A stretch of DNA of 64,000 nt from Camelus dromedarius (lineage: Eukaryota): NCBI RefSeq assembly GCF_036321535.1, contig NC_087454.1, positions 17,422,001 through 17,486,000 of the forward strand, written 5' to 3'. A program made the translations under genes and the position numbers. Numbering within the stretch: position 1 is the first letter of the stretch; each line of letters starts with the position of its first letter. Below the pieces are notes generated by a model. That model made no database searches, was not told the DNA's origin, and saw nothing but the letters and a program-made list of their open reading frames with translations. Positions 958 through 39,561 of the stretch are shown in pieces.

Positions 958-1290
<333 letters not shown>

Positions 1291-3175: not shown

Positions 3176-3216
3176 ACACCCTTTTAAGAACCTTTTGGGT
3201 GGCTCTTAAAAGAGCC
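3176..3216 (-). terminator. Histone stem-loop and HDE of H1t
   Basis: Minus strand GGCTCTTTTAAGAGCC at 3216-3201, then ACCCA and purine-rich AAAAGGGTGT. Confidence 0.9.
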
Positions 3217-3252
3217 TTTGGGTTCTGTTAAGTATTTGTTTTTTCCAAAGTC

Positions 3253-3885
3253 TTACTTCTTGGTTGCCCTCCTAGAACTTGATTTCTGCTGGGTCAACTT
3301 CGGATTCCCAGTTTTATTAAGATTCCCTGCCCTGGCCTTTGCTGGACTCTTCCGTTGTTGTTTGGCCTTCGCTCCTTTCGCTTTCCTGCCGCTCCGAGCC
3401 GCTTTCTGAGCCGTTGTTGCCCTAGGCTTTTTAGCGGTCTTGTTGCTCTTGGCACTCTTTGGAGACTTCACGTCTCTAGATAAGACCAGCTTCTTGGCCT
3501 TGGAAGAAGCAGGCTTTCTAACCTTGGTAGGCTCAGGAGCAGCCTTTCTACTGAGCTTGAAAGAGCCGGAGGCACCAGTACCCCTAGTCTGCACCAGTAT
3601 CCCCTTAGTCACCAAACTCTTGAGACCCAACTTAATACGGCTGTTATTTTTCTCTACATCATAGCCCGCGGCTGCCAACGCCTTCTTCAGCGCGGCCAGG
3701 GACATGCCAGCTCTTTCCTGAGACATCGAAAGGGCCTCGATGATCAGCTTGGACACCGAAGGGTTTGTAGTCTTTCGACTCGCACCCATCAAGGCAACCG
3801 GCTTCCTGCCTCGCTTCTTAACCGGAGGTTTTTCCATGGGAGCTAGAACCGGGTCGGCTGGAGCCACTGGTGCTGTCTCAGTCAT
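3253..3885 (-). CDS. H1-6: Testis-specific linker histone H1t, 210 aa
   Basis: First ATG at 3885 (MTETAPVAP); the ORF-track extension starts at GTG; H1 globular domain [28 protein letters not shown] with H1t-type features [32 protein letters not shown] and LTQQ. Confidence 0.93.
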
Positions 3886-6100: not shown

Positions 6101-6329
6101 TTTCCAAGGAGACAATCAATTCCAAGAAGAAGGCTCCTTAGCAGCTGGAAGACAAAGAGCCAGAGGATGGTCCTTAGGTCTTGAGGAGAAAGGTAAGAAA
6201 TCCTCTCCTGAGACCATCCCAGAACTGGCCAGTGAGAAGCTATTGTGGGGACTCTTAAAAGGGACCAAAGGGTAAGAGGAAGAGGAAAAAGGGAAAGGAG
6301 AATTGAAGGAGGCAAAAGAGAACTGGATG

Positions 6330-7769: not shown

Positions 7770-8110
7770 TGATATTATAATGATGAATGTAATTCATTAT
7801 ACTTTTGCCCAAACCCATAGAATGTACCAGAGTGAGCCCTAAAAAGACTTAGAAAAGAATAAAAAAGAAAAAAAAAATAAGAAAGGAAAAGAAAACAACA
7901 ACAAAAAAGAGTGAACTCTAAGGTCAACTATGAACTTTGGGTGATTATGCTGTTGTCAACATTGGTTCAGTTAAAAAAAAAGTGCCATTCTGGTGAGTGA
8001 TATTGACATGTGGAGGGGTGGCAGGGGGTGGGCGTAGGGGATATATGGAATACCTCTGTACCTTCTTCTCAGTTTTGTTGTAAACCTAAAACTGGTCTTT
8101 TAAAAAAATC
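7770..8110 (+). mobile_element. Old L1 (L1MB/L1MC-like) 3' fragment
   Basis: gtgaactctaaggtcaactatgaactttgggtgattatg...ggaatacctctgtaccttcttctcagttttgttgtaaacctaaaact. Confidence 0.55.
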
Positions 8111-8349
8111 ATATATAATATATATTTATTGAAATTCTAGTCCATTCATCATTATTTATGTCTAGAATTGACAGGGCCAGGCTCAGTCTCTCTAATGCAT
8201 AGAGTCAAGGACCCTGAGCACTTTCCCAAACCTCCAAAAATCTCTTACCCTGATGCTTGCTGGGCATCCTTGACCCACTTTTGAGGCTAGCAGTCTTTCT
8301 TCCATTCAAGATCTCAAAACTTGCATCATCTGTGTAGAATTCTTAAACA

Positions 8350-8533
8350 CATAATTGTATTTGTTTACTAATTTATTTCCATTTTAAAAAAAATACTTAT
8401 TTCAGTGCATTAAAGCCCAAATGCCTGTGTTTACAAATTAGTAACTAACATCTATCACACCAGTCATTTCAGTAAATCCAACAATAAAAGTGGTACATTG
8501 CAATCATCAATATTCTTATATCCTGTCCTACAG
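8350..8533 (-). other. Candidate distal non-coding terminal exon of H2BC4 (spliced, polyadenylated isoform)
   Basis: Minus strand: 120-nt AG-free, mostly pyrimidine tract (8655-8536), CAG| acceptor at 8536-8534, AATAAA at 8377-8372, downstream TGTGTTT. Confidence 0.55.
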
Positions 8534-10059
8534 CTGAGTTTGTAGGGAGATTATAGCAGGGAGAAAAAGTGAAAAGAAAATAAAGGAAAAGAAAAGAGAA
8601 GAAGGGAGAAGGGGAGGAGAAGAGGAAGAAAAGAAAACAAGAACAAAGTTTTATCCTCATTGCTTTTGAAGCCAATTATTTTACTGTCGGAGAACTTGAT
8701 TTGCTTAGAAGACAAGTTTAGGGCCATGAGTGATGAGGTCAAGGTTTTACCCCAGTATTGTCTCCTGAAGTATTTCGGTGTTCTTATAGAATGAGACAAG
8801 CCCCATCATTTCTGTTCCTTCATCCGTTGGAGCCTGCAGCTGGATGGGGCTCTAATACCACCAATACCCATAGCAAGATGAAACCAGCTTTTTCTATCAA
8901 TTATTATGCAAATTGCTTATTGGGCGATAATGCTATGTAAGTCTTTAAATGAAATAATCAAAGTCTCATTTTCCTCCCTCAGAACTGAAGTGGGACAGTA
9001 AGAAAGTAGCTGATTCTCCAGATTATCTCTTTTTTCTAATTTATAATAAACACCTAATTCCTGAGGATTTGTCCAGCTGATTTTGAGAGTCCAAAGAATG
9101 TAGTCAGACCCTAGAATGTCTTGCTGGCAAGGTCACAGGCAGCTGTGTATTTGGCCCAACTTATTTTTATGCTTAGTCATCATCCAGGATTGCACAGGGT
9201 GAAAGTTTGGAAATGCTAACTAATGTTTAATGCTTTTCAGGTTAGGACTCTGGAACTCCCTGGCAAAATGCTGACTACACACCCTTCTAAATCTGAAAGG
9301 CTCAACAAAAGATAACTATCATCCTTTATTTCCTTAGGTATATGTCTAGAGCTCTAATTAAATATGAGTGGGGAAAAAAATGCATTTGCTTTCAATCTGT
9401 TGGACCAAGGTAAAATCCATGGAATCAGCTGGCGATCTTTTCATATCACTCGTGAAATTCCTATCATTTAAGGAAGACTAGCTTCTACCAAGGTCTTCAG
9501 TTATGAGCTGCCATAGGTCCCTTTAGGGTATTAAGAAGGTCATAAATGAAACTTTTCAAACATCACACAACGAATGAGCACCCACCAGCTGCCAGGCACT
9601 CCAAATTGTGTTCTATGCATTAAAGATCTTTGATCGTCACAAACATCTAGAAGATAGGTGCTATTACCATCATCTGCAAGATACAGAAGAGGCAAAGAGA
9701 GATTACTGACTTGACTCAGTCTCACAGCTAATAGTTGACAAGCTGGGAGTAAAACTTGGAGTTCCTACCTCCAGAGGCTACACTTTTGTCATCAAGGAGC
9801 AATGCTGTACAGCCATTTAGCTGACATCATACCATTTCTAGGACAAGTATTTTGTATTTGCTATTTCATTTAACCCTCACCCCATCTTAAACAGTAGGTA
9901 ATTATTACCACCCACAGACTCAGAGTGGTAGGTTTGTCAAACAATAACTCAAAGACATTTAGTTAATTATTAACACACTGTTTATTGTGTATAAGGTATG
10001 CCAAACAATTGATTGATTACATCCAAACACAGTAAAAAAAAAAAAAAAGATAAGATAAT

Positions 10060-13308: not shown

Positions 13309-13350
13309 GCAGCTCTTTTTGTGTATACGTGGGTGGCTCTTAAAAGAGCC
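13309..13350 (-). terminator. Histone stem-loop and HDE of H2BC4
   Basis: GGCTCTTTTAAGAGCC at 13350-13335; AAAGAGCTGC at 13318-13309. Confidence 0.95.
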
Positions 13351-13384
13351 TTTGGGGTTAGGTGNNNNNNNNNNNNNNNNNNNN

Positions 13385-13765
13385 NNNNNNNNNNNNNNNN
13401 NNNNNNNNNNNNNNNNNNNNNNNNNNNNNNNNNNNNNNNNNNNNNNNNNNNNNNNNNNNNNNNNNNNNNNNNNNNNNNNNNNNNNNNNNNNNNNNNNNNN
13501 NNNNNNNNNNNNNNNNNNNNNNNNNNNNNNNNNNNNNNNNNNNNNNNNNNNNNNNNNNNNNNNNNNNNNNNNNNNNNNNNNNNNCCATAGCCTTGGACGN
13601 NNNNNNNNNNNNNNNNNNNNNNNNNNNNNNNNNNNNNNNNNNNNNNNNNNNNNNNNNNNNNNNNNNNNNNNNNNNNNNNNNNNNNNNNNNNNNNNNNNNN
13701 NNNNNNNNNNNNNNNNNNNNNNNNNNNNNNNNCGGGGCAGGAGCGGACTTGGCTGGCTCAGGCAT
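13385..13765 (-). CDS. H2BC4: Histone H2B type 1-C (mostly masked)
   Basis: ATG at 13765 ([11 protein letters not shown]); unmasked island SKAM places Met60 at 13588, exactly in frame; stop inferred from 126-aa length; divergent from H2A. Confidence 0.88.
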
Positions 13766-14493
<728 letters not shown>

Positions 14494-14536
14494 NNNNNNN
14501 NNNNNNNGAATTTCCCGAAGTGCTTTAAAACCCAAA

Positions 14537-14577
14537 GGCTCTTTTCAGAGCCCCCCACTACTTCGAAAGAAGAGCTC
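14537..14577 (+). terminator. Histone stem-loop and HDE of H2AC6
   Basis: GGCTCTTTTCAGAGCC at 14537-14552; AAAGAAGAGCTC about 15 nt downstream. Confidence 0.93.
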
Positions 14578-38904: not shown

Positions 38905-39561
38905 ATGTCCGAGACTGCGCCCGCCGCACCAGCTGCTCCGGCCCCTGCCGAGAAAACGCCAGTGAAGAAAAAGGCCCGTAAGTCTGCAGGTGCAGCGAAG
39001 CGTAAAGCGTCTGGGCCCCCAGTGTCCGAGCTCATTACCAAGGCTGTCGCCGCTTCCAAGGAGCGCAGTGGCGTATCCTTGGCTGCGCTCAAGAAGGCGC
39101 TAGCGGCTGCTGGCTACGACGTGGAGAAGAACAACAGCCGCATCAAGTTGGGTCTTAAGAGCCTGGTAAGTAAGGGCACCCTGGTTCAGACCAAGGGCAC
39201 TGGCGCCTCAGGTTCTTTCAAGCTCAACAAGAAGGCAGCTACTGGTGAAGCCAAGCCTAAGGCCAAGAAGGCGGGCGCGGCCAAACCCAAGAAGCCCGCA
39301 GGAGCTAAGAAGCCCAAGAAAGCGACTGGAGCAGCCACCCCTAAGAAGAGCGCCAAGAAGACCCCAAAGAAGGCGAAGAAGCCTGCTGCGGCTGCAGGAG
39401 CCAAAAAAGCAAAGAGCCCGAAAAAGGCAAAAGCAGCCAAGCCTAAGAAAGCACCCAAGAGCCCAGCGAAGGCCAAAGCGGTGAAACCTAAGGCGGCAAA
39501 ACCAAAGACCGCCAAGCCCAAGGCAGCCAAGCCAAAGAAGGCGGCAGCCAAGAAGAAGTAG
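38905..39561 (+). CDS. H1-4: Linker histone H1.4, 218 aa
   Basis: Complete [32 protein letters not shown]...[10 protein letters not shown]; ARKS motif; nearly identical to human H1.4 as recalled. Confidence 0.96.

Follow-up and report, generated by a model that had tools for sequence, protein, structure and literature searches.

A candidate distal terminal exon of the camel H2BC4 gene and its possible boundaries

A candidate terminal exon downstream of camel H2BC4

Our analysis points, tentatively and at less than even probability, to a long non-coding terminal exon of camel H2BC4, which would run on the minus strand from 8984 to about 8358 and contain the stretch at 8355-8533 as its 3' part. 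All coordinates refer to the window, the 64,000-nucleotide segment of the Camelus dromedarius genome that was analysed. As judged from sequence comparison, the conserved CAG at 8985 is the likeliest acceptor, ahead of the CAG at 8534 on which the initial annotation had relied, and the exon would thus start about 450 bases further upstream. Under the proposed mechanism, the stem-loop cleavage site would be passed over in non-dividing cells, and a donor presumed to lie just after the stop codon, among masked letters, would be spliced to the downstream acceptor, with removal of the stem-loop and the HDE. Polyadenylation would then occur roughly 10-20 nt past the AATAAA at 8377-8372. With the acceptor at 8985, the exon would measure about 625 nt and the intron about 4.4 kb.

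We prefer this reading because of the identity of the gene, the isoform already known for it, the distal polyadenylation signal, the acceptor at 8985, the complementary distribution of two hexamers among mammals and the presence of a single signal in camel. Confidence in the longer exon is modest, because the statistics are modest and just six lineages enter the comparison; the uniform conservation of the surrounding block, the retention of YAG sites at background level and the absence of the block from bat and hamster all argue against it.

Known spliced, polyadenylated isoforms

Spliced and polyadenylated mRNA from HIST1H2BC (H2BC4) was described in human tissues by Lyons et al. 2016 (NAR, PMC5100578), and the orthologues in mouse and cow behave likewise, so that the human isoform named in the initial annotation is documented. 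Splicing starts from a donor located after the stop codon and ahead of the stem-loop, which is hence removed; about 10 nt around this donor are highly conserved across mammals, and the junction is so close to the stop codon that the spliced mRNA escapes NMD (PMC5100578). In terminally differentiated cells, replacement H2A and H2B are thought to come from the polyadenylated mRNAs of a small number of replication-dependent histone genes (PMC5100578). In addition, Kari et al. 2013 (PLoS One, PMC3661734) reported downstream second exons for HIST1H2BD/H2BC5 and HIST1H2AC/H2AC4, along with little or no poly(A)+ HIST1H2BC RNA in fractionated human HCT116 cells. A distal spliced poly(A) exon of H2BC4 is therefore an already known phenomenon; since the isoform is found in human, mouse and cow, such an exon is expected in camel H2BC4 as well, and the question is its position.

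The camel candidate resembles the isoform of Lyons et al. in several respects: the gene is the same by synteny, the strand is the same, and the terminal exon is non-coding and lies downstream, toward H1t. The camel intron would likewise begin right after the stop codon and take out the stem-loop and HDE, and, because the junction would fall within 55 nt of the stop codon, the mRNA would be expected to escape NMD. The likeness is one of gene, strand and intron layout, as the text of Lyons et al. states no coordinates of the 3' exon for human, mouse or cow; moreover, their isoform was seen as RNA, whereas the camel candidate is known here from DNA sequence alone. The H2BC5 and H2AC4 isoforms are similar in that a replication-dependent gene, once stem-loop processing is bypassed, turns to a second exon and poly(A) site further downstream, and they rise on differentiation and cell-cycle arrest (PMC3661734). 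They differ in coming from other genes, and local BLAST, with letters 7794-7829 masked in the subject, detected no paralogous similarity between the camel stretch and the rest of the window. The description of the stretch as a "mirror-image" terminal exon is only an analogy.

Locus and host gene

The open reading frames of the window follow the order H4, H1t, H2B/H2A, H1, H2B, H2B, H4, and the window corresponds to the segment H4C3, H1t, H2BC4/H2AC4, H1.4, H2BC5, H2BC6, H4C4 of the camel histone cluster (Table 1). As this order matches the major mammalian histone cluster around H2BC4/H2AC4, the H2B gene is assigned by synteny as the H2BC4 orthologue; its arrangement head to head with H2AC4, its position upstream of H1t and the strand that it shares with H1t support this assignment, and the host gene named in the initial annotation, H2BC4 on the minus strand, was correct. 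The H1t protein of the window is also found in GCA_036321535.1 CM070328.1 and shows 98% identity to Camelus ferus H1t and 93% to alpaca H1t. A 126-aa H2B gene is called in the same record at a place that maps to 13765-13385 of the window, and from this call the stop codon is placed at 13387-13385, with the mask running 20 nt into the 3' UTR. Reading of the visible letters at 13364-13350 on the minus strand revealed no GT dinucleotide.

The histone stem-loop was the sole family reported in an Rfam scan of the window. A stem-loop of the H2A gene can be read at 14530-14550 on the plus strand, yet it remains below the Rfam gathering score, for which its masked upstream flank may account. About 60 nt beyond the H2B HDE, overlapping ATTAAA/AATAAA hexamers are present at 13254-13245 on the minus strand and are kept in alpaca; a read-through H2B mRNA, unspliced and with its stem-loop retained, might be polyadenylated there. 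Further along the interval, at 4698-4672, camel is without some 2.5-7 kb that all the other mammals compared carry there, which reflects either a camelid deletion or repeat insertions in the others upstream of the H1t promoter.

Table 1. Coordinates of the genes, processing signals and candidate exon features in the window.
Feature	Coordinates	Strand	Remarks
H4 ORF	979-1290	+	
H1t coding sequence	3885-3253	-	
TGTGTTT, GU-rich downstream element	8345-8351	-	
Candidate exon body of the initial annotation	8355-8533	-	unique in the window, 71.5% A+T
Distal AATAAA poly(A) signal	8372-8377	-	kept in alpaca and whale
Acceptor AG of the initial annotation (end of CTCAG)	8534-8535	-	kept in alpaca, Cervus, whale and squirrel
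AG-free pyrimidine-rich tract (purine run on the plus strand)	8536-8655	-	120 nt; in all aligned mammals, with varying length
Decayed proximal poly(A) hexamer	8656-8661	-	AATGAG in camel; GATAAA beside it at 8655-8650
Conserved acceptor-like site, CAG ending at 8985	8985-9009	-	14 of 17 pyrimidines; CTTAC branch-like motif, A at 8999
Histone 3' stem-loop of H2BC4	13310-13355	-	Rfam RF00032, 40.1 bits, E 2.8e-09
First 20 nt of the 3' UTR, masked; presumed 5' splice site zone	13365-13384	-	placed from the donor position in Lyons et al. 2016
H2B coding sequence (H2BC4 orthologue)	13385-13765	-	ATG at 13765; mostly N-masked; ORF with 11 residues (not reproduced here) and SKAM visible
H2A ORF (partner of H2BC4)	from 14101	+	
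H1 ORF	38905-39561	+	
Further ORFs, two H2B genes		+	
Further ORF, one H4 gene		-	

The candidate acceptor at 8985 and the proximal polyadenylation hexamer

A scan of the interval for YAG sites preceded by a good proximal pyrimidine tract turned up one that every aligned species retains, the CAG ending at 8985. At 8985, both the YAG and its tract (13-15 of 17 pyrimidines) are kept in Cervus, Oryx, whale, horse and squirrel, that is, in all five aligned non-camelid lineages, and squirrel retains them despite an average identity to camel of 64%. Retention of the YAG alone is at background level, as the block has 74 YAG sites, of which 7 survive in all five lineages against about 8 expected from the 45.6% of columns that are fully identical; among these seven, the site at 8985 alone also preserves a strong tract.

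A second element lies about 105 nt upstream of the 8534 acceptor, where camel reads AATGAG and the pyrimidine-rich tract follows directly, as a U-rich downstream element would. Cervus, Oryx and horse read AATAAA at this position, whale AATAAG and dugong ATTAAG, and the AATAAA of squirrel lies 6 nt further on, so that the pair formed by the AG at 8985 and a proximal AATAAA is kept in ruminants, horse and squirrel. In every lineage that lacks the proximal hexamer (camelids, whale and dugong), an AATAAA stands at or close to the distal site; where the proximal hexamer is present, horse and squirrel show just ATTAAA distally, and in ruminants about 650 nt pass without a distal hexamer. This complementary pattern spans six lineages only. 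A hexamer scan of camel 8984-8378 detected no further AATAAA or ATTAAA.

In the light of the acceptor kept at 8985 and of the ancestral AATAAA presumed at 8661-8656, the pyrimidine tract can be read as a former downstream element, and the comparison suggests that it originally served a poly(A) site and was not an acceptor tract. The longer exon would ancestrally have used the signal at 8661-8656 and ended near 8640, with the tract as its downstream element; with the loss of the proximal hexamer in camelids, the distal AATAAA would have come to define the 3' end. An alternative or additional acceptor of this exon may exist in the AG at 8534 or the TAG at 8528; either could also serve as the acceptor of a small internal intron, for which the GGG/GTAAAA at 8751/8750 would, speculatively, be a possible donor.

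A broader evolutionary scenario, which we regard as unlikely on the present comparison, is one of polyadenylation-signal turnover: the proximal AATAAA, which a U-rich tract follows, would have been lost independently in camelids, whales and sirenians and replaced by the distal AATAAA about 280 nt on, and the whole exon would have been lost in bats and muroid rodents. If so, the 3' UTR would have been lengthened, the camelid downstream element would have become a long pyrimidine tract before a new lineage-specific acceptor, and bats and muroid rodents would need a non-orthologous exon.

Conservation of the block and the possibility that it holds no exon

The 10 kb upstream of H1t was compared from eleven mammals; in seal and bear the orthologous block lies beyond this 10-kb flank, and the dugong locus covers the block end only. 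Over the block at 10225-7882, identity to camel amounts to 96.8% in alpaca, 81-84% in blue whale, 73-77% in horse, 75% in Cervus (a red-deer relative), 74.5% in Oryx and 64% in ground squirrel. Conservation is uniform along the block (64-84%) with no exon-specific rise, and per-50-nt identity in 8533-8350 is no higher than in the flanks, a pattern that is neutral-like at the candidate exon. The best conserved 70 nt of the region, at 8296-8365 on the minus strand, are nearly invariant in camel, deer, whale and horse; they start at the presumed cleavage site and extend well beyond a normal downstream element. Two stretches of the minus strand resemble repeats by eye, namely a LINE-1 3' fragment at about 8090-7760 and a MIR-like element at about 9780-9570.

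The block is missing from two of the species compared, with 9770-7663 absent from the molossid bat and 9646-7422 from the golden hamster; nearly the same 2.1-2.2 kb was lost in each, apparently through independent deletions. It therefore cannot hold an exon of all mammals, although mouse expresses the isoform, and its absence from hamster makes it probable that the mouse exon is not orthologous to the camel stretch. In blue whale, the equivalent of the candidate exon is interrupted by some 200 inserted nucleotides (positions 3187-3389 of the whale locus), which have an A-rich tail and are apparently a SINE.

The neutral-like conservation, the independent deletions in bat and hamster and the whale insertion are all consistent with the next most plausible explanation, a quite possible one, in which the stretch is neutral intergenic DNA, an old pyrimidine/purine tract beside A+T-rich sequence with a chance AATAAA, and the isoform, if any, ends elsewhere. 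Hexamers are indeed frequent here, with 15 AATAAA/ATTAAA on the minus strand of the 9.4-kb H2B-to-H1t interval, and of the seven AG sites in the window with a pyrimidine-rich tract, four are followed by an AATAAA or ATTAAA within 80-400 nt, so that the combination of tract and hexamer is not special. Other ends for the isoform can be proposed: an acceptor at 9674 with the ATTAAA at 9231-9226, a hexamer retained by all six aligned species; an acceptor at 6145 together with the AATAAA at 6001-5996; or unspliced read-through to 13254-13245. However, the acceptor at 9674 is camelid-specific and lies inside the MIR-like element, and that at 6145 is retained in neither whale nor horse. Two more points weaken the explanation: drift alone would hardly pair the 8985 acceptor with complementary poly(A) hexamers, and the small sequencing runs described below contain the stretch.

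The shorter exon first proposed

The individual motifs listed in the initial annotation are present on the minus strand exactly where it had placed them. The last two letters of the acceptor-like CTCAG are the A at 8535 and the G at 8534; the pyrimidine-rich tract is free of AG for 120 nt, the nearest upstream AG being at 8657-8656; and a unique body of about 180 nt is followed by the AATAAA and the TGTGTTT. At the sequence level, the candidate exon end thus has a canonical poly(A) signal and downstream element. CA dinucleotides at 8363/8362 and 8357/8356 are candidate cleavage positions, and TGTA motifs are found 55-120 nt upstream of the distal AATAAA. The antisense open reading frame at 8414-8542, when compared with protein representatives, gave one match only, to an unrelated 731-aa protein.

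Acceptor strength was judged by pyrimidine counts. The 100 nt upstream of the 8534 AG are 90% pyrimidine, and the last 20 nt just 60%, with purines at -6 to -8 and at -10, which makes for a mediocre acceptor. Among the 8531 AG sites on both strands of the window, the tract at 8534 is the most extreme, and no other site combines 120 nt or more free of AG with a pyrimidine content of 90% or above; this extremeness only says that a low-complexity pyrimidine tract is present, not a splice site.

Across species, the pair of signals is poorly kept. The CAG at 8534 is CAA in horse and CTG in Oryx, and the distal AATAAA is replaced by a nearby ATTAAA in horse and squirrel and deleted in Cervus, Oryx and dugong. 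The AG at 8534 and the AATAAA at 8377 are both intact only in camelids and blue whale. The cross-species conservation of this pair that an orthologous exon would predict is thus largely absent, with the AG lost in horse and Oryx and the hexamer in Cervus, Oryx, squirrel and dugong. What stands of the claim of an orthologous exon is the strand, the interval and the canonical poly(A) signal.

A terminal exon of about 180 nt, from 8533 to about 8355, behind a 4.8-kb intron from the H2BC4 donor and using the 120-nt tract with the CAG at 8534 or the TAG at 8528, therefore appears doubtful to us. All the features that it needs are present; an AG-free zone of 120 nt permits a distant branch point, the decay of the proximal hexamer in camelids leaves nothing to stop transcripts from reaching 8534, and none of the five aligned lineages (Cervus, Oryx, whale, horse and squirrel) has lost the TAG at 8528. 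Against this stand the weak proximal context of the 8534 site and the loss of its CAG in horse and Oryx. The stronger acceptor at 8985 would also be transcribed before it. In ruminants, moreover, no hexamer occurs for about 650 nt downstream of the 8534 orthologue, although a relative, the cow, expresses the isoform.

Sequencing runs that contain the stretch

Fourteen sequencing runs from five studies each contain at least half of the sampled words of 8340-8540. Eight of the 14 are small (0.46-0.9 Gb, from two studies) and are guessed to be RNA, with word shares of 82-100%, seven of them at the same share of 0.82; in the run searches, none of the runs listed as containing the stretch was recorded as RNA. 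The recurrent share of 0.82 would fit contigs bounded by an exon edge, such as 8533, and the poly(A) site, as the shorter exon would predict, but a single sequence difference from the reference yields 0.82 equally well. In addition, an EcoRI site at 8342-8337 and a PstI site at 8839-8834 frame a fragment of about 500 bp, and the small runs may be reduced-representation DNA, which their sizes fit too. The run listing offers weak support for expression at most.

That the stretch is an exon of another transcript, for instance an intergenic non-coding RNA starting between H2BC4 and H1t, is very improbable: the acceptor and poly(A) signals are silent on the promoter and nothing ties the region to the H2B donor, but inspection of 13300-9000 revealed nothing promoter-like or CpG-rich, and the literature assigns the interval to the 3' intron and exon of H2BC4 in other mammals (PMC5100578).

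Implications

The initial interpretation of the stretch as a distal terminal exon of H2BC4 is plausible in kind, and the exon boundaries are probably not those that it proposed. An incomplete gene model would gain from a mapped camel exon. Such an exon would leave the present view of the mechanism as it is and would instead supply one more observation on the freedom with which the 3' exon evolves while the donor stays fixed.
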